From assembly GCF_000400465.1 (NCBI RefSeq), contig NW_008806289.1, forward strand, positions 30,001 through 62,000: a stretch of DNA of 32,000 nucleotides, given 5' to 3'. Shown here piece after piece: positions 4,531-31,031 of the stretch. The notes below the pieces were generated by a model. That model searched no databases. It was not told the DNA's origin and was given only the letters and a program-made list of their open reading frames with translations. Both the position numbers and the translations under genes were made by a program. The stretch comes from Wallemia ichthyophaga EXF-994 (lineage: Eukaryota; Fungi; Basidiomycota). Each line of letters starts with the position of its first letter. Position 1 is the first letter of the stretch.

Positions 4531-6039
4531 ATGAACATTGGAAGCTATTCAAAATCTGTAGCCTTATCGACAATACTAGCTGGCTCTATAAAAGTTTTTA
4601 ATTTCATTATAAACCAGTCTAGCCTTAGTTACGTCGATCCTGCAAGTCTCGGCAGCTATTCGTACAAATTGGAGTTGTCTTATACATCAATTCAACAGCT
4701 GTCAAAGGATTCTGTTGGATTAGCTTGCTTGAACGGTCATTTGACCTCTCAGCAGTCTCTTAACATCGCTTTTATTTCTATTCCACTCAACGTCATCACC
4801 ATTCTTATCACTCGATTATTTTTCATCGGCTATAATGGCGTTGAGAGTGATTTCAATACTGCTCTTAATCTTTACTCTCTTTCCTCCCTTCTTGAAGCCT
4901 TAATCGAGCCACTCAAGTTTCACTCAATTAGACGCGCAAATCTTAATAAAAAGTCTTTTATTGATTGTCTTGCTTTTGCTATCAAATCGATTGCCACTCT
5001 AGCTCTCCTCACGCGTCACAGCACACAACACCCACTCACTTGCTACGCTATAGCTCAACTATCCTACTCTTTCATTCAATTTGCCGGCTACATCACTGAA
5101 ATTTTCTCCTTCTACCCACAGCGACTACACACTGAACCTTTCCTCAGCCGCTCCTCCTTACTCTCCCTCCGGGCCCTCTCAACTCAAGCCCTCATAAAGC
5201 TAGCTCTCACACAAGGCGACAAATTCATTATTTCCTCACACCTCTCTCCCTCTGACCAAGGCGCTTTCGCTCTTGCAGACAACTATGGCAGTATCCTTGC
5301 GCGCATCGTCTTCCTCCCCATCGAAGAAACCTCCAGGGTGTACTTCTCTAACAACAAGGCGCCCCAATCTTTAGCTACAGTGTTGGGTGTTGTGCTGCAT
5401 GCTTACTCTCTCCTCCTCGTCATACTACCAGCATTTTTACCCAACTATGTCCAATCTATCCTCCAAATCCTTTTACCACGATACGCAAACTCAAACGCAT
5501 CTTCTATACTCCCTCATTATAGTCTTTATATCCCCTTGATGGCTTTCAATGGTATTCTTGAGTCGTTTCTGCATAGCACCGCCTCCTCAGCTCAGATTGA
5601 CAAACATTCGAAATTTTTAACACTCATTTCATTTTTGTTGATGCCTTCGATATACCTTGCACTCAGTTATACACCACCCTCAACACACTCACTCATTATT
5701 GTTTACTCCAACATAGCTAATCTAGGATTAAGGGGGGCATACGCGTACAAATATGCCTCTCGAACAATGCGTATGTCTAATATTTCCCCAAGCAAGTCTG
5801 TCGCTCTTGCATGTGTTGCTGCAGGGGTAATAACGCGTTTTACATTATTCAACTGCTCTCTCGTCAGTCACATGGTCACTGGAGGCGTATGTGCATTAAG
5901 TGTTCTTCTAATCATGTGGGTGTGGTTTTGGATTGCGGCTGACCAAAAAACAGACTAATAGTTCTACAGATATACAGCGGAACGTCAGTGGTTTGTTTCA
6001 ACCTTACACCAAATGAAAAAGGATGAAAAGTTGGAGTAA
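4531..6039 (+). CDS. RFT1: Rft1, ER lipid-linked oligosaccharide translocation protein
   Basis: Polytopic hydrophobic protein with LTQGDKF, DQGAFALADNYGSILARIVFLPIEETSRVYFS and YIPLMAFNGILESF. A probable terminal intron at 5916-5969 gives the C-terminus IYTAERQWFVSTLHQMKKDEKLE*. Confidence 0.92.
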
Positions 6040-6062
6040 TACATGCATGTCTAATATCAAGT

Positions 6063-7205
6063 CTATTGGGGTTTGTAGAATGGGTAACTTGGTTTGCCTT
6101 GTTAGCTTTGCTAGATTTCCAAATGAACAAAGAAGGACCTACTCTGTGTATCCTTTTTCGCCTCCGCTGTAGTAAGTCGTACTATCAGGCTCATTGAGTG
6201 GCCAACCGTTCCGCAACCGCTCTGGAAGATCTGGGTTACTGACAAAGTGTTTTCCAAACGCCACAATCTCGTCAAACTCCTCAGCTCTACGATTAGCCAC
6301 ATCGAGTGCATAACACAAGTTGGAAATGACGGGGATACCCGCCATCTTAATCTGTGACTTGAGTTCATCCCCCATTTTAATATCTTGGTCGCTGAACCCT
6401 TCCACAAAATGTATGTAGGCGAGGTTAGGTAAGTTTTGTACGAGGATTCGCACCAAAGGTTCGAAAGCAGAGTAAGGATCTTCGCCCGCTCTCATACCCT
6501 GGTATCTGGAGAAAGGGGAGATACGCACGCCAGTTCTGCGTTCACCCACCGCCATAGCCGTGCTTTCTACGACCTGGAATGGGAAAGCGAGGTTATTGAG
6601 ACCGCCGAAGCCGTCCGTGCGCGTATGTGAGAGCTGTATAGCCTGATCGAGCAGATATCCGTTACTAGAAGGAAATGTTACAACGTGTCTTACTACGCAC
6701 TACGCACCCACGCTGCATGTATTTCTACGCCATCGAAACGTGCGCCTGCGACGGCATTTACAGCCGCCTGACTGAAATGGCTAATGTATCTGCGCACATC
6801 CGTCTCTGAGAGCTGGGAGACGATGTTACCGTTGTAAACGTCGTGCGACATGCCAACCACGTTGACGAGTGCAGGGTCAGCGATGCGACCGAGTGCATAC
6901 AGCTGACAGAAGATATATCCACCAGCTTCGTGCACGCCGTCGACGACTTGGCGCCAGCGCTCTATCTGCCGCTGTGTGTATATGCCAGGGAGTCGGGGGA
7001 GGCCGCCTGCCTCGCGCGCTGGGAGAGTCGCCTCGCTCAGTATTAAGCCGCCCTCGCTTGCACGCTGGCGGTAGTAGAGGGGCGTGTGCGGTGATAGAAC
7101 ACCGTCATCGTCGACTCGCATTCGTGTCAGCGGAGCCATGGCTATGCGATGGCGCAGGGTGCATTCACCGAGCATTTTTGGGCTGAATAGGCCATGGAGA
7201 CGCAT
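6063..7205 (-). CDS. Old Yellow Enzyme family NADH:flavin oxidoreductase (ene-reductase)
   Basis: HRIAMAPLTRMR, YYRQRA, SEAT, GGYIFCQL. Intron 6665-6711 joins EIHAA|NGYLLDQ, giving the H-x-x-N-x-Y active site. Also GVRISPF and FGKHFVSNPDL. Intron 6088-6142 gives GYT|DYPFYKPQ*. Confidence 0.93.
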
Positions 7206-7291
7206 GGTTTAGTCGTGGCGGGTGTAAGCGGGTGTGAGCCAAGAGAGAAGACGGGTGGTTGATTAGACACCGTCATCACTCAAGGCACACA

Positions 7292-7964
7292 ATGGCCACT
7301 GTCATTCAGCTGAAAACCAGCCAGGGCGATATCGATTTGGAGCTCTACGTTAACCACGCACCTAAAGTGGGTGGATACTTACGACGCTTAGCACCCAGCT
7401 CACTCGCCAGACTTGCAACAACTTCAGCCAACTCGTGCAGCGCGGCTACTATAACGGCGTCGCATTCCATCGTATCGTGTGCGTGTGCCGTCCTGCGCGA
7501 TATCCCCTTCTAACACCCACTCCAGGCAGGATTTCATGATTCAGGTGCGCTAAGCTCGCCCCTTCAAACTAACTTGACTCACTTTCCTCCTTTACAGGGC
7601 GGTGATCCAACAGGAACTGGTCGAGGCGGTACATCGGTTTATGGGGGTAAATTGTGAGTCATTAGCCGGCCGGCAGATGCACAACTGAAAAAGCCCCAGC
7701 GAAGATGAAATTAACCCAGAATTGCGCTTCACAGGCGCTGGTATCCTTGCAATGGCCAACGCGGGCCCGAACACCAACGGCTCTCAATTCTTTATCACGC
7801 TCTCCCCCACTCCCTATCTAGACGGCAAGCACACCATCTTCGGCCGCGTTTTGCGCGGTATGCGCGTCGTACAGCGCATGGCAAATGTCGTCGTCGATAA
7901 GGCTGACAGACCAATCGAGGATGTCAAAATATACAACGCATCAATCCAGCAAATGATTGAATAG
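7292..7964 (+). CDS. PPIL1: Spliceosomal cyclophilin PPIL1-like peptidyl-prolyl isomerase (5 exons)
   Basis: Exons 7292-7366, 7411-7478, 7526-7544, 7598-7653 and 7700-7964 give [95 protein letters not shown]. Confidence 0.9.
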
Positions 7965-8022
7965 TAATTGTAGTTTAGATGTATTTTATTAATTATCTTA
8001 TGAAAATTTTAGCTCAATCTTT

Positions 8023-24663: not shown

Positions 24664-25254
24664 TCAACATCCAATAGCTGGTACAAAGTCATTAACAGCT
24701 TTTCTGTTGATGTGCGACAATTTGTGCTCTTTGGCGATGGGATCAATCACCTTATCCCAGACTTTCTGCTGGTGAAACCGTGAGGAAGTGTACATTATAA
24801 AACACTCCACGCCAGTCACGCTCTCGTCGTAAATGCGTATTTTGGGTAGCTGTGATTGGCGGAACAAGCCCGATTGTGCACCGTCAACAACCTCAGCAGC
24901 TACAAGACTGGGTGTGTCTGAACTTCTGAATTTGTTGCCTAGAAGCGAAATTCTTGGTCCTTTCTCTCTACGCATTTCTATTGGAGAAAATTGAACAATT
25001 CTGTACTCATCTAAGTGTACATGTAAACTACGCCAAATAAGCTCGTCTCTGTAATCAATTGTTCTCATTTTCTCGTCATCTACCAGTCCTACAGTCACTG
25101 AGGCTATTTCACGTCCTTTTTGCTTAAATCGAAGGCACCAGCTGTATGCGTGGATTTCAACGTACTCCGTATCGATATCCAACTCGACACACTTTGCGTG
25201 GATTGAATTGAATGGCGCTTTATCGCCAATGGTTATCTCTCGTAATGCTGTCAT
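24664..25254 (-). CDS. Orphan protein of unknown function (~196 aa from ATG 25254)
   Basis: Uninterrupted ORF with globular mixed alpha/beta composition. The frame stays open upstream to 25350, so the true start is uncertain. No family motif recognised. Confidence 0.6.
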   Translation of the reverse strand: MTALREITIGDKAPFNSIHAKCVELDIDTEYVEIHAYSWCLRFKQKGREIASVTVGLVDDEKMRTIDYRDELIWRSLHVHLDEYRIVQFSPIEMRREKGPRISLLGNKFRSSDTPSLVAAEVVDGAQSGLFRQSQLPKIRIYDESVTGVECFIMYTSSRFHQQKVWDKVIDPIAKEHKLSHINRKAVNDFVPAIGC

Positions 25255-25272
25255 TTTACTTGACGGTATCAA

Positions 25273-26133: not shown

Positions 26134-29086
26134 ATGTCAAGCATCATTAATCTCCTCAAGTCCCAATCAGACAACCACACCCGTGGACTGTACTTTTACC
26201 CAGGTGCTGCAAAGACTAAGCCTAGCTTTACATCCTACGCCAGCCTCTACACTCAAGCCTTAAATATCGCTGCCGGTTACAAGAGCGCCGGCTTCAAGTA
26301 TAATGACATTGTTCTACTCTATGTGAGTGATTCATTCATTCGGTGGCAATATTAATACTGATAACAAAATTAGATGTCCTCACACGAAGCTTATGCTTTA
26401 CACTATTGGGCTGCTGTACTCGTCGGATTAGTACCAACCATCCTCACTCCGCTCACCAATGATCCTAAGCAAGTCGAAGCTCACTTGAGCCATTTGAAGA
26501 ACCTTCTTGACCCACGCATAATTGCATCTTCAGAGCTTCACGCTCATTTGGATTCCATTAAGGATACCTCTGAGATCTACTCACCAGAAGACATACTTGC
26601 AAGAGCCAACGGAAAGGTTTTGCAAGACTCAGACATTAATTCAACAAAGGATTTGGCTTGTTTGATGCTGACTTCCGGATCTACTGGTAACGCTAAAGCT
26701 GTCGAAATGCGCCACGAAGCTATCCAAGCTGCTGTCAGGGGAAAATCTCAAGCACTTGGTCTCACATCTGAGACAAAGTTTCTTAACGTGAGTGGGATGT
26801 TGAATAGAACAAAAGCATACTAATATCTATCAGTGGATCAACTTTGATCACGTAGCCAACTTGACCGAGTGTCACCTCACTTCAATGTACCTCGGTGCTG
26901 ACCAGTACCATGTTCCTGGCGCAGCTCTCCTCACCAACCCACTCGACTTCCTCCAAATTATTAACGATCAACGCATCAACTTCAACTTCTCACCAAACTT
27001 CTTTTTATCTGCCCTGCTCGACTCATTCAACAGAGAGCTCAAACACAATGCTGATCTGCGCTCCAAGTACGACCTTTCATCGCTCAAGAAGATTACATCT
27101 GGTGGTGAGGCCTCGTCTACTAAGATGTGTGCTACTCTTATCGAGCAAGTACTCGCTCCAATGGGTGCACCAAAGGACCTGATCGTCCCAGGGTTTGGAC
27201 AGACTGAAACATGTGCCGGGTCTATTTTCAACAAGACGTTCCCATCACAGGAGATCCGCGACTCAAGAGCTTATGCTGCAGTTGGATTACCAATGAACGG
27301 CATCGAGATGAGAATCGTTGACCCAGAGACCTCAAAGGCAGTAGCTGATGGTCAAACAGGTGAGCTGCAGATCGCCGGCCCAGTCGTCTTCCGCAAGTAT
27401 TACCGCAATGAGAAAGCGACAAGAGAGAACTTCACTCCTGACGGTTGGTCCAGAACTGGAGACAGAGCATACATGTCATCATCTGGCTGTGTCTTGGCTG
27501 GTCGTGACAAGGACTCTATCATCACCAACGGCGTCAAGTACTTCAGTTCAGAGATTGAATACATGCTCGAAAACGCTGGTATCGAAGGTATGCTCCCATC
27601 ATGGATCGCCGCAGTGCCATACCGTCCAGAAGGTCACGCTACGGAAGACATTCTTATCTTCTTCGCTCCATCATTTGACGTGAGCAAGGATGTCAATGGT
27701 TTGAAGGATGTTGTCGAGGCGATCGCCGACAGAGTCGTCATGTACTGCGCTCACCGCCCATACCGTATTCTCGCATTACCTACTGAAGCATTCGGCGGCA
27801 AGTCTTCTCTCGGTAAGATCTCGCGCAACAAGGTATTGAAGGCTTACGATGCTGGTGCATTTGTCAAGTATGAAGCTGAACAAAAGTTAGCTCTTGAGGA
27901 ACTCCGCCGCACTCAACTCGTTCCACCTGAAACAGACTTTGAGCGCAAGGCTGCAGCTGCTATGGCTGAGACTCTCGGCCTCGACTACAAGTTCATTGGT
28001 CGTCACGACAACTTCTTCACTTTCGGTGGCTCATCGCTTGAATTGGTTAGATACAAAAACATACTTGAGAAGTACCTCGGATTGACAGAGGAGCTTCCTC
28101 TCATCACTGTCCTTCGCAACCCAACTCCTGCTACACTTGCGCCATACTTGGACAGATACTTGCGCACTCAATTCGGTGAAGTTCCTGACAATGCTGATGA
28201 TATCTACGATCCAATTGTTCCACTCCAGCTTAAGGGTTCCAAGCCTCCTCTTTTCCTTATCCACCCAGGTGTTGGTGAAGTATTGGTCTTCTTGAACCTC
28301 GCCAAGTACATTACCGACAGACCGGTGTACGCTCTTCGCGCTAGAGGTTTCAACCCAGGTGAAACGCCATTCACGGACATGAACACCCTCACGGATGCTT
28401 ACATGGCTGGTATTGAGAGAACAAACCCAGATGGACCATACTGTATCGCTGGATACTCATACGGTGCATGTCTCGGATTCGAGATCTGCAAGAAGCTTGA
28501 AGCAAAGAACAAGGAGATTGGTTGGTTTGGATGTTTCAACCTTCCTCCACACATCAAGGAACGTATGCAGCAGCTCGACAGAGTTGAGGTGAGTGGAAAG
28601 AAGAAAGTCATCTACACCTACTAACTATTTTCTCAGGTCGTTCTCAACCTGTCCTACTTCCTCGGCTTGATGACAGAGGACTACGCTCATGAGATTTCAC
28701 CAGAGATGCACAAGTACACTCCGGAGCAAGTCGTAGAGCACATAGTGGCTATTGCACCACCAGCTCGTCTGCAAGAGTTGGAGTTGACAGCTTCTAAGCT
28801 GCTCAACTGGGGTTCTATTGCTGAAAATCTTCAAGCTCTGGCTAGAGGATATGAGCCAACAGGAACAGTGTCGAACATTAACGTCTTCATTGCGGATCCA
28901 CTGGCCGCTGTTGCCAAGACGCGTCAAGAGTGGTACGAGAAGAAGTTGACCCCATGGAAGGATTTCACTAGAACTGAGCCTGTTTTCATCGATGCTAAGG
29001 GCGCACACTACACCATCCTTGCACCAGAGAACGTCGTCGATTTCCAATCCAAGATGAGAAAGTCTCTCGAAGCACGTGGTATGTAA
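26134..29086 (+). CDS. Stand-alone NRPS-like enzyme, A-T-TE (alpha-keto acid dimerising quinone/furanone synthetase family), ~935 aa
   Basis: Exons 26134-26322, 26374-26787, 26834-28588 and 28637-29086. A domain: LTSGSTGNAKAV, NWINFDHVANLTE, FSPNFF, SGGEA, GFGQTETCAG, RTGD, GRDKD..NGVKY, LGKISR. T domain: DNFFTFGGSSL. TE domain: HPGVGEVLVF, GYSYG, FNLPPHIK, GAHYT. No condensation or reductase domain. Confidence 0.92.
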
Positions 29087-29232
29087 ACCAACCCCGTCTT
29101 ATTTCCCCCATCACGCTCAACTATTTCCCTTTTTGTCTTATCTTTCCACTTTTAGTTCTCTTCTTATAATTTGGATTCATGGATACTTTTTAAACTATAT
29201 AATCTTGTCTCAGCCACATCCATGATTTGAGG

Positions 29233-29262
29233 CACACTAGCCACACTATCCACACTAGCCAC
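29233..29262 (+). repeat. Short tandem repeat (CACACTAGC-like 9-mer x3)
   Basis: cacactagc-cacactatc-cacactagc-cac in the gap between the NRPS-like and Gfd2-like genes. Confidence 0.7.
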
Positions 29263-29492
29263 CAATCCCAGCCAATCTATCTAAATCCGGTAATGGGTTT
29301 TAAATACCAAAAGTGAAAGGAGCGGAGTATTCAGAATTACATGTGCTAGTAAGATTTGTCACTCTAAATTTGAAATCAGTGACAGTTTCAAGTCATGCAC
29401 TGCCCCCGACGTACCTCTTCACTTTTACGGAATCGGCTGTTGAAGGGGCTGAAGTGGAGGCAATTTGGCTATCAAAGTCTTACAAAAGAACG

Positions 29493-31031
29493 ATGAGCAT
29501 GATAGATTTGAAAGACTTATACACGACAACGCTATTAAGCTACGAAGAAGAAGAAGAATCTAGTCTTCTCGATAAAGGGTATGGGCAGCATTTCAGGTCA
29601 CTCGATGCATTTCTACAAAGCTTTAAGCAGTTACAGCCAAAGCAGTCACTCGCTAATCCTGTTCCAAGCGCTGGTTGGCAGGCTTTTGTCATTATTGATA
29701 ACAAACTGCAAGGGCACATATGCGTTGAAGAAAAAGTTGTACAGAACTACTTCAAATGCCTTTCAAAGCGTTACAATAGCGATAGAATAAGACCACCAAA
29801 ACATGTAACTCAAGTTGTTCCACATAAAGATTTCAAACCAGGCAATATAAAGTATATATCCGATTACGCGACCTATCGGTGGGTTTTTGTATGTTTATTG
29901 TTTTACACCACACTCACACTCCTACACAGCCTATTGTATCGCTCATTTGACAGCCACATTACTCAAATCATTCGCAATCGCATCCGCAAGCATTCACCAA
30001 AAGAGTCAACTTCGCTGTGGTTGAGTAAGAAGCATACCTTTCTTGCTCTAGATGTTGAATGGTGGGAGAACGTTCCCGTAAATATTCTTGAATTCGGCTA
30101 TGCTATCTGCAGAGCTTCCTTTTTAGCAGGCAGAGAAGACGTTCACTGGCCGCCGATACCTGAGGACAACTATCGACGCGCACACTACAAAGTCCGCAAC
30201 CCAGGCGGAGTGACTGATAATCACAAGCCTTTCATCTTTGGAAAAACTAAATCAATTTACAAAGACAGCGTGAGGAACTTGTTGGAGTCCGTTATTAGCA
30301 GCTTGTCTTCGCCTGAGACCTCGACTGAATTGAACAATCTCGTCATTGTTGGTCATGGTATACAGGAAGCATTCAAGAAATGGAAGTTGAATGTGCCTTC
30401 AAATGTCGTCATGATAGACGTCGGCCAGCTGCACCAGATGATATATACAACAATGGGTGTATACCCACTCAGATCAATACTCGACACACTCAAAGTACCA
30501 TACCAAGCGCCAAGTCTAGGAAACACGGGCAACGATGCCATGTGGATTATGGAAGCTTATGCGACGTTGTGCGAGCAGTACGGAGCAGGTAGAGGAAAAA
30601 ACCAATCGTCATCGGGTGGTAAAGTGACTTCCTCCGAGAATTTTTCCAGCGGTACATCCTCAACGAATGAATCATCTTCAGCTGAAGCCAGCAAGTTGAA
30701 GAAGAGGGTTTCTTTCAGTGGAGATGCTACGTTGGGAGGTGAAGAGGCAACTGCTACATCCACACCAGGCGTCTTTGCACCATACAATCCCATGATGGGT
30801 TATCCGCAAGTGCCAGGAAATCATCCAATGGTGACCCCAATGATGGGTCCGATGATGAGTCCAATGAGTTCAATACCCCTCGCATCGCCACCATCAATGC
30901 ACAATCCAAACGTTGTTGATTTCAGGAAGTCTGCGGCGTTTAGACAATCTAATCTATCGCTTAGGCCTGAGTTGAAGAAGGGGGATTACTATCAGTCATT
31001 TGAAAAGCGTAAATCTTCATCGCATTTGTGA
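29493..31031 (+). CDS. Gfd2/YDR514C/QIP-like DEDD-family exonuclease-fold protein with a low-complexity C-terminus
   Basis: ExoI-like FLALDVEWWE..ILEFG, ExoII-like LVIVGHG, then MIDV and ExoIII-like GNTGNDA. Probable start is ATG 29493 or 29499. Probable in-frame intron at 29879-29929. S-rich and P/M-rich tail. Confidence 0.7.
   Translation: MSMIDLKDLYTTTLLSYEEEEESSLLDKGYGQHFRSLDAFLQSFKQLQPKQSLANPVPSAGWQAFVIIDNKLQGHICVEEKVVQNYFKCLSKRYNSDRIRPPKHVTQVVPHKDFKPGNIKYISDYATYRWVFVCLLFYTTLTLLHSLLYRSFDSHITQIIRNRIRKHSPKESTSLWLSKKHTFLALDVEWWENVPVNILEFGYAICRASFLAGREDVHWPPIPEDNYRRAHYKVRNPGGVTDNHKPFIFGKTKSIYKDSVRNLLESVISSLSSPETSTELNNLVIVGHGIQEAFKKWKLNVPSNVVMIDVGQLHQMIYTTMGVYPLRSILDTLKVPYQAPSLGNTGNDAMWIMEAYATLCEQYGAGRGKNQSSSGGKVTSSENFSSGTSSTNESSSAEASKLKKRVSFSGDATLGGEEATATSTPGVFAPYNPMMGYPQVPGNHPMVTPMMGPMMSPMSSIPLASPPSMHNPNVVDFRKSAAFRQSNLSLRPELKKGDYYQSFEKRKSSSHL

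Follow-up and report, generated by a model that had tools for sequence, protein, structure and literature searches.

A candidate quinone synthetase gene in Wallemia ichthyophaga: a conserved stand-alone A-T-TE enzyme with threonine at specificity-code position 5

The window analysed here, a 32,000-nucleotide stretch of the genome of Wallemia ichthyophaga EXF-994 (contig NW_008806289.1, positions 30,001 to 62,000), contains a gene (locus J056_001507; positions 26134..29086 of the window on the + strand, ATG to TAA) that is predicted to encode a 935-aa synthetase resembling nonribosomal peptide synthetases (NRPS-like) and comprised of an adenylation (A), a thiolation (T) and a thioesterase (TE) domain. 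With a probability of about 0.6, we predict that this gene encodes a functional non-reducing A-T-TE synthetase of the family that dimerises aryl-alpha-keto acids, the quinone synthetases. The substrate, the product and a role in pigmentation are what we infer beyond this. The enzyme is an uncharacterised and phylogenetically isolated member of a known family, and the family itself is not new. Its interest rests on exceptional conservation, a new code residue and a possible link to the unexplained pigments of an extremophile. An earlier reading made from the sequence alone had proposed an uncharacterised quinone-pigment pathway in a minimal genome. The genome is small (9.6 Mb, 4884 genes) and the enzyme is biochemically uncharacterised, but the gene was already on record: Jancic et al. 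2016 (PMC5201246, Table 3) listed XP_009269410 and XP_006957811 as TdiA-like and J056_001507 as antiSMASH cluster 'Other 3'. That sequence-only reading is partly supported by our analysis, being largely right at the family level, over-confident on the product and wrong on the motif ETCAGS.

Domain architecture and catalytic residues

The only Pfam domains assigned to the protein (precomputed) are AMP-binding, PP-binding and Thioesterase. There is no condensation domain, no ketosynthase (KS), acyltransferase (AT) or other polyketide synthase (PKS) domain and no C-terminal dioxygenase domain. Among solved structures, the A and peptidyl carrier protein (PCP) span, aa 10-641, matches the A-PCP didomain of McyG at 1e-82, and there is a match at 4e-57 to 6ulw, a keto-acid-selecting A domain. 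The TE span, aa 653-921, matches NRPS and fatty acid synthase (FAS) thioesterase structures at about 1e-15. A homology search returned more than 100 A-T-TE homologs at E values of about 1e-246 to 1e-200, and the product is 100% identical to P0001, annotated as hypothetical protein E3P77_01030 of W. ichthyophaga (E = 0). Because E values are at these levels for the Wallemia protein, the homologs and McyG, a chance match is excluded.

Public names attached to the protein ('Polyketide synthase PksJ', 'acetyl-CoA synthetase-like', K01897) and its NCBIfam matches, which are to generic fatty-acid ligases only, would fit a gene that is not a secondary-metabolite synthetase at all and instead encodes an acyl-CoA synthetase or a PKS or is a decaying relic. 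We consider this highly improbable. The A domain is followed by a carrier and a TE domain in a protein that has none of the PKS domains, the NCBIfam matches all lie far below the curated cut-offs, and the 1466-aa 'PksJ' is a fusion with the neighbouring gene. Decay is excluded by intact catalytic residues and by a ratio of nonsynonymous to synonymous substitution rates (dN/dS) of ~0.03.

Residue invariance was counted in an alignment of 121 full-length relatives. The A domain (~aa 1-545; 26134..27865, on the + strand like every feature of the gene, with introns 1 and 2 inside) has the motifs TSGSTGNAK, GFGQTE, SRTGD, GRDKD and GKISR intact. Val208 (26852..26854), in the motif FDHVA (aa 205-209, nt 26843), occupies position 1 of the specificity code, corresponding to Asp235 of GrsA, and is invariant (121/121), which bears out the earlier observation that Val replaces Asp here. 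The catalytic lysine of A10, Lys529 in GKISR (27815..27817), is likewise present in 121/121. The T domain (~aa 566-642; 27926..28156) carries the phosphopantetheine attachment serine, Ser602 (28034..28036), which is the second Ser of FGGSSL and invariant in all 121. The first Ser of GGSSL (aa 599-603, nt 28025-28039), Ser601, is variable among these homologs; the intact attachment site earlier placed at ~28034 is refined to the second serine.

Structure alignments place the TE domain at ~aa 653-935 (28187..29083, intron 3 inside). Its predicted nucleophile, Ser743 (28457..28459; GYSYG, aa 741, nt 28451-28465), corresponds to the serine of 7crn that has been changed to Ala in 7dxo, and among the 121 relatives it is invariant or nearly so. 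Asn770 (28538..28540; FNLPPH, aa 769) stands at the position of the canonical triad Asp, aligns with the Asp of AB3403 (4zxh) and 7crn, and is Asn in 119/121 relatives. The predicted catalytic His910 (29006..29008; GAHYT, aa 908) matches the catalytic His of both 4zxh and 7crn and is conserved in 78/79. The Ser/Asn/His set named by the sequence-only reading is thus present at residues that align with the catalytic Ser/Asp/His of solved TE structures. The same reading had treated ETCAGS (aa 326) as a deviation from ETCAGC. This did not hold up: Ser is the majority residue at this site (92/121) and also occurs in the phenylpyruvate-specific AcyN, the polyporic acid synthetase of Ascocoryne sarcoides (homolog AlfA).

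We also considered the second His of the published NPS3 motif (..FDH..) as a required member of the triad and rejected it. The residue is lacking in the Wallemia protein, and it is not required since it is missing from AcyN, which is functional, and from BtyA.

In a separate A-T-TE subfamily in the alignment (P0199, P0206, P0210, P0231, P0244, P0252 and P0272; 100% bootstrap) the nucleophilic Ser of the TE is replaced by Cys, and code position 1 holds Ser rather than Val (..FDHS..). These residues suggest that its members may act on a different substrate class or carry out different chemistry.

Gene structure and a fused reference annotation

The gene forms a single continuous frame only once three GT..AG introns are spliced out. 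Exon 1 (26134..26322, aa 1-63) ends at a junction that is gap-free against AcyN and is followed by intron 1 (26323..26373; 51 nt, GTGAGT..TAG), the position of which is kept in W. mellicola and W. hederae. Exon 2 (26374..26787, aa 64-201) carries the A3 motif TSGSTGNAK, and intron 2 (26788..26833; 46 nt, GTGAGT..CAG) separates it from exon 3 (26834..28588, aa 202-786), which continues through the A and T domains into the TE domain, of which it encodes the first half. Intron 3 (28589..28636; 48 nt, GTGAGT..CAG) lies inside the TE domain, and exon 4 (28637..29086, aa 787-935 and TAA) ends in ...LEARGM, matching the family-wide ...LE(E/S)RGL end. All three introns are in phase 0, and each occupies the same position in the three Wallemia species. 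Alignments to AcyN and characterised relatives are gap-free across the exon junctions. No spliced transcript contig encoding the exact 935-aa product is on record. The complete ~935-aa A-T-TE gene described from the sequence alone is confirmed by the four-exon model and its full identity to P0001.

In the EXF-994 reference annotation this gene is part of XP_009269410 ('Polyketide synthase PksJ', 1466 aa), in which the synthetase is fused to the downstream gene with a DEDDh_C domain. The fusion depends on a 301-nt 'intron' (29079..29379, + strand; GTATGT at 29079) that removes the stop codon. We rejected this model, which requires an intron of 301 nt vs 46-51 nt for the verified ones. Two genes are favoured because the family C-terminus coincides with the 935-aa end, because introns are ~50 nt, and because two separate genes are annotated in most strains of W. 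ichthyophaga as well as in W. mellicola and W. hederae. The 301-nt 'intron' is probably an annotation artefact, and a by-product of the analysis is that the reference entry is a mis-named fusion of two genes.

Substrate specificity

Every non-reducing NRPS-like enzyme characterised so far acts on aromatic alpha-keto acids (PMC12105029; PMC9047271). Val at code position 1 marks alpha-keto-acid activation, and position 5 correlates with the substrate and, according to mutagenesis, partly controls its choice (PMC10316625; Seibold et al. 2023). Ile or Val at position 5 corresponds to phenylpyruvate, Asn in basidiomycetes or Phe, Ala or Leu in ascomycetes to 4-hydroxyphenylpyruvate (4-HPP), and Asp, as given in the legend of Fig. 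S1 of that paper, to indolepyruvate (PMC10316625). Our alignments agree with this scheme, with Ile in AcyN, HapA and CorA, Asn in the Suillus proteins and Leu in BtyA. We state code positions with confidence for positions 1, 5 and 10 only.

At position 5 (Ile299 of GrsA) the Wallemia enzyme has Thr289 (27095..27097). This Thr is found in all three Wallemia species and in 7/121 relatives, none of them characterised. Its context, (R/K)(R/K)I-T-SGGE, is very like the RRI-N-SGGE of Suillus and chytrid enzymes. Thr is isosteric with Val, yet polar like Asn. Phenylpyruvate and 4-HPP appear about equally likely as the substrate, and the two are not distinguishable because no characterised enzyme has Thr at this position. 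Since the residue lies at the position steering phenylpyruvate vs 4-HPP, characterisation of the enzyme would extend the alpha-keto-acid specificity code.

The 2016 label 'TdiA-like' implies another substrate, indole-3-pyruvate, and with it a bis-indolylquinone synthetase of the TdiA/AtqA kind. The protein was grouped with TdiA by BLAST and phylogeny (Jancic et al., PMC5201246), Wallemia makes tryptophol so that indolepyruvate is available, and an Asn-type TE (Asn at the position of the triad Asp) also occurs in P0178, a representative with Asp at position 5. We nevertheless consider an indolylquinone unlikely in the extreme because position 5 is Thr and not the Asp that the Fig. S1 legend of PMC10316625 assigns to indolepyruvate enzymes. 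In addition, the A4 context is LNWINFDH in Wallemia vs LSWVHMDH in TdiA and AtqA, the closest characterised relative is AcyN and not TdiA, and the representative with Asp at position 5 lies across the main split of our trees from Wallemia.

Thioesterase type and predicted product

The alignments show that the family holds both Asn-type and Asp-type TE domains. Asn-type domains are found in the quinone formers AcyN, HapA and CorA, and the NPS3 TE is Asn-type by the motif printed in a preprint (bioRxiv 10.1101/2020.03.25.008516). Asp-type domains are found in the butyrolactone former BtyA and in MicA-like representatives. The sequence-only reading had put forward a rule by which Asn denotes quinone formers and Asp furanone formers. 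AcyN, HapA, CorA, NPS3 and BtyA fit it, but MelA, whose product aspulvinone E is a furanone, reportedly carries TE residues of the quinone type (bioRxiv 10.1101/2020.03.25.008516). Because of this exception the rule is unreliable in the Asn direction: Asn at the triad acid position is necessary, not sufficient, for the quinone-forming subgroup. An explicit primary statement of the rule that includes RalA, which we know by published descriptions only, was not found in the literature searched.

Modelled on characterised members of the family, the A domain would adenylate an aromatic alpha-keto acid (phenylpyruvate or 4-HPP) from primary metabolism, and the keto acid would be loaded as a thioester onto the phosphopantetheine arm of Ser602. 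Ser743 in the TE domain would then take over the first unit and another would be loaded, after which the TE (Ser743/Asn770/His910) would couple both units via Claisen/Dieckmann-type C-C condensations and release a symmetric dimer. Because the TE is Asn-type and closest to AcyN-type TE domains, the most likely product appears to be a 2,5-diaryl-3,6-dihydroxy-1,4-benzoquinone, which would be polyporic acid if made from phenylpyruvate or atromentin if made from 4-HPP. An aspulvinone-type furanone is the main alternative product and a real one. The terphenylquinone or indolylquinone proposed earlier therefore survives in part, with the Asn-type TE favouring a quinone and the Thr at position 5 making the indolyl version unlikely.

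Relationship to characterised synthetases

The full-length protein shares 41% identity with AcyN, 36% with HapA, 35% with CorA and 36% with BtyA (~100% of length, E < 1e-150). AcyN is an A-T-TE enzyme of 930 aa vs 935 in Wallemia, and the two proteins are alike in Val at position 1, in the motifs ETCAGS, GYSYG, FNLPPHI and GAHYT and in a C-terminal ...LE-RG(L/M). Neither gene has an adjoining tailoring enzyme. They differ at position 5, where AcyN, which is strictly specific for phenylpyruvate, has Ile and Wallemia has Thr. AcyN is an ascomycete enzyme co-expressed with a DAHP synthase and a transcription factor, whereas the neighbours of the Wallemia gene are housekeeping genes only, and in A-domain and full-length trees the two enzymes fall on opposite sides of the main split.

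On the same side as Wallemia are the basidiomycete clade I polyporic acid synthetases (CorA, HapA1/2 and PpaA1; Seibold et al. 2023), which share the A-T-TE core, Val at position 1 and an Asn-type TE; the A4 context NWINFDHVAN-TE is common to Wallemia and Psilocybe PpaA. Identity to clade I is 34-38%, position 5 is Ile or Val in clade I vs Thr in Wallemia, and Wallemia is not nested in the CorA/HapA/PpaA clade. The clade II atromentin synthetases (AtrA, GreA, InvA1/2/5 and NPS3, with Suillus homologs as the proteins compared) are also A-T-TE enzymes with Val at position 1 and an Asn-type TE, share 37-39% identity with the Wallemia protein, and have a similar position-5 context, (K/R)(K/R)I-x-SGGE. 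They have Asn in place of Thr at position 5 and the TE motif LINIPPHI in place of FNLPPHI, and the second His of the NPS3 motif (..FDH..) is lacking in both Wallemia and AcyN. Atromentin synthetase genes lie in clusters that also hold genes for an AtrD-type aminotransferase and an alcohol dehydrogenase (PMC10218983); the Wallemia gene has no such cluster. For atromentin synthetases, cross-chemistry that varies with the expression host has reportedly been described (Geib et al. 2019).

The furanone synthetases BtyA (butyrolactone IIa synthetase of Aspergillus terreus) and MicA-like enzymes have the same A-T-TE architecture, with 36% identity in the case of BtyA. The BtyA TE motif is LDLPPFH and that of the MicA-like representative is IDYPPHI, both Asp-type, and BtyA has Ile at position 1 and Leu at position 5. 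None of these features occurs in Wallemia.

Phylogenetic position and conservation

We placed the Wallemia proteins in bootstrapped neighbour-joining trees based on Kimura distances. The references were HapA, CorA, Psilocybe PpaA, Suillus proteins annotated as atromentin synthetases, BtyA, MicA-like proteins, and Streptomyces and chytrid proteins, obtained from a scan of 1.8 billion cluster representatives, from cluster look-ups and from a search seeded with a Trametes homolog. In the trees, the Wallemia proteins of the three species make up a branch of their own, which falls together with basidiomycete clade I, the Suillus atromentin clade and the chytrid and actinobacterial enzymes on one side of the main split (97% bootstrap for the A domain, 80% for the full length). 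In these distance trees they come out as sister to this whole assemblage and fall within neither basidiomycete clade. Because the lineage branches outside the two clades of basidiomycetes recognised in 2023, it is relevant to the question of how many times quinone synthetases arose. The chytrid protein P0149 / P0290 (Geranomyces) has Asn at code position 5 and the TE motif LVNIPPHI, as in Suillus atromentin synthetases. The atromentin-type signature is thus not limited to Boletales or Dikarya.

The closest proteins from outside Wallemia are 44-46% identical, and the named ones are mostly from lichen-forming ascomycetes. The best 120 matches outside Wallemia (39-46% identity) are ascomycete wherever named, as might follow from a recent horizontal acquisition from an ascomycete, for example from a lichen-forming or halophilic black yeast lineage; the TE domain analysed alone also groups weakly (42% bootstrap) with the Asn-type TE domains of lichen fungi and AcyN. 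We think such a transfer very unlikely. The best identity is only about 45%, the gene occupies the same syntenic locus in three Wallemia species with saturated synonymous divergence, its three ~50-nt introns are of the Wallemia type, its GC content is native (0.484 in the coding sequence vs 0.43-0.48 in neighbouring open reading frames, ORFs), and the A-domain and full-length trees place it as the earliest branch on the basidiomycete/chytrid/bacterial side. The higher identity to ascomycetes is explained by the short Wallemia branch. Synteny, introns, base composition and the trees together point to a Wallemia lineage that is old and has been inherited vertically.

The locus is syntenic in W. 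ichthyophaga, W. hederae and W. mellicola. Across these three species the synthetase shares 92-96% protein identity vs 46-88% for the neighbouring genes, with dN/dS of 0.02-0.04 and saturated dS of 1.3-1.8. The exon 4 segment, which encodes part of the TE domain, is the most conserved part of the protein (98-99% identical). The synthetase is under very strong purifying selection, and its conservation greatly exceeds what is typical of secondary-metabolite genes. Since it is also conserved better than Vps41 or Chs5, we argue that its product matters to the biology of the organism.

Fragments of 573 aa that are 90% identical to exon 3 (P0002 cluster; Logan/ENA contigs) turn up repeatedly in assemblies of environmental samples and of sequencing runs. 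Their probable source is other Wallemia species present in food or indoor samples, in which case the gene would be present across the genus.

Expression, tyrosinases and pigments

In Table S6 of Zajc 2013 the synthetase corresponds to GME3742_g, which we identified via its 4401-nt model length. Its expression, in reads per kilobase per million mapped reads (RPKM) computed on this fused model including the downstream gene, was 441.5 at 10% NaCl and 101.5 at 30% NaCl (log2 -2.12, false discovery rate 0). The gene is transcribed, and more so at 10% than at 30% NaCl; the sequence-only reading had held that a lack of transcript would speak against it. In the same table, two tyrosinase-like genes change in a similar way: the very highly expressed GME2612_g (log2 -2.20, RPKM 2612 to 570 from 10% to 30% NaCl) and GME2587_g (log2 -2.10, RPKM 93 to 22). 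Two of the three tyrosinase-like genes of W. ichthyophaga therefore flank the fold change of the synthetase (-2.20 / -2.12 / -2.10). About 26 of the 4884 genes fall in that 0.2-unit log2 band, and a post hoc estimate puts the chance of finding two of three tyrosinases there at ~1e-4. By eye, both proteins have a hydrophobic N-terminus resembling a signal peptide.

All Wallemia species produce NaCl-induced red and yellow pigments, the structures of which are not known and which were attributed to polyketides (Jancic et al. 2016, PMC5201246). The antiSMASH analysis in that study found eight clusters and no PKS cluster, and its 'PKS homologues' are carnitine acyltransferases and a quinone oxidoreductase (PMC5201246). 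With no genuine PKS reported, no core enzyme for a quinone-type pigment other than the synthetase is visible in the Wallemia genome. This gives it value as a target in a very small secondary metabolome that includes salt-induced red and yellow pigments without structures.

These observations raise the possibility of a route like that of MelA and TyrP, the Asp-melanin pathway of Aspergillus terreus, in which 4-HPP would be converted to aspulvinone E or atromentin and secreted tyrosinases would hydroxylate and polymerise this into a brown, non-canonical cell-wall melanin. The aspulvinone E synthetases MelA/ApvA are A-T-TE enzymes with reported quinone-type TE residues, so that MelA is a documented case of a furanone former with such a TE, and aspulvinone E is cited as an accepted melanin monomer (PMC12139152, citing Geib 2016). 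The pigment role of MelA is paired with a tyrosinase; in Wallemia two tyrosinase genes co-vary with the synthetase, which is correlative only, at the post hoc chance level given above. Thr289 shares its polarity with the Asn found in 4-HPP enzymes and stands in a similar SGGE context, and no PKS for dihydroxynaphthalene (DHN) melanin has been reported. Against this, the expression data cover two conditions only and hundreds of genes drop at 30% NaCl, no melanin has been reported in Wallemia according to Zajc et al., and the tyrosinase genes are unlinked to the synthetase gene. The link from Thr to 4-HPP is an analogy only. MelA makes its furanone from 4-HPP, ascomycete 4-HPP enzymes have Phe, Ala or Leu at position 5, and MelA was compared by description and not by sequence. 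We hold this route to be a tentative one, with the odds well against it.

More speculative still, and somewhat less probable in our view, is a broader proposal in which the Wallemia enzymes would represent a third, early-branching basidiomycete lineage of aryl-pyruvate dimerising enzymes with Thr at position 5 as a new specificity signature, and the two co-regulated secreted tyrosinases would convert the product to a non-polyketide cell-wall pigment, either Asp-melanin-like or derived from a terphenylquinone. If this were true, the salt-responsive pigments of a genus without a reported PKS, which are structurally unsolved, would originate from the tyrosinase-coupled pathway. It would also explain why the synthetase is conserved beyond its housekeeping neighbours in the most halophilic fungus known.

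Several points weigh against the prediction of a quinone synthetase that acts in pigment formation. Beside the MelA exception, the TE reaction mechanism of the family has not been worked out in detail (PMC9047271), and, on the sequences compared, the substrate is not predictable for enzymes with Thr at position 5. The only structurally known Wallemia pigments are pyrrolylpolyenes, and the literature searched contained no link of Wallemia to terphenylquinones, atromentin, polyporic acid or aspulvinones. The RPKM values include counts from the downstream gene. Expression of the synthetase drops at high salinity, while the pigment numbers of Jancic et al. rose from 0 to 15% NaCl; the two data sets come from different salinity ranges and media, and this comparison is neither support nor contradiction.

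Neighbouring genes

The genes adjoining the synthetase are housekeeping genes, encoding Vps41, Chs5, a WD40 protein, an Arf GTPase, MT-A70 and PRMT. Genes located further to the left in the window encode a VTC/SPX protein, an Rft1-like protein, a large nucleoporin and an isochorismatase; they occur together with a fragment of an old yellow enzyme (OYE) gene. No aminotransferase, phosphopantetheinyl transferase (PPTase), tyrosinase, oxidoreductase, methyltransferase or transporter gene lies within 10 kb on either side of the synthetase in the three Wallemia species, and the whole 32-kb window contains only housekeeping or unknown genes, with no aminotransferase, PPTase or tailoring gene. The gene thus stands alone, as had been proposed from the sequence.

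A divergent ORF of ~200 aa without a Pfam domain (24664-25272, - strand) and the synthetase gene have a common upstream region of 860 bp. In W. hederae the ORF is 69% identical; it has no tblastn match at the W. mellicola locus and is evidently not an obligatory partner of the synthetase.

Downstream, the ORF at 29313-31031 (+ strand, 572 aa) encodes a tail of low complexity that is rich in Ser, Pro and Met, as well as the exonuclease-like DEDDh_C domain (PF21762 in the W. mellicola ortholog). It is fast-evolving, with 51-58% identity between Wallemia species vs 92-96% for the synthetase. The OYE-like (NADH:flavin oxidoreductase) ORF fragment lies at 6693-7205 (- strand), ~19 kb upstream behind housekeeping genes, and was not counted as linked. 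It falls in a part of the window (6000-8000) in which G+C is raised to 0.50-0.53 vs ~0.44 around it.

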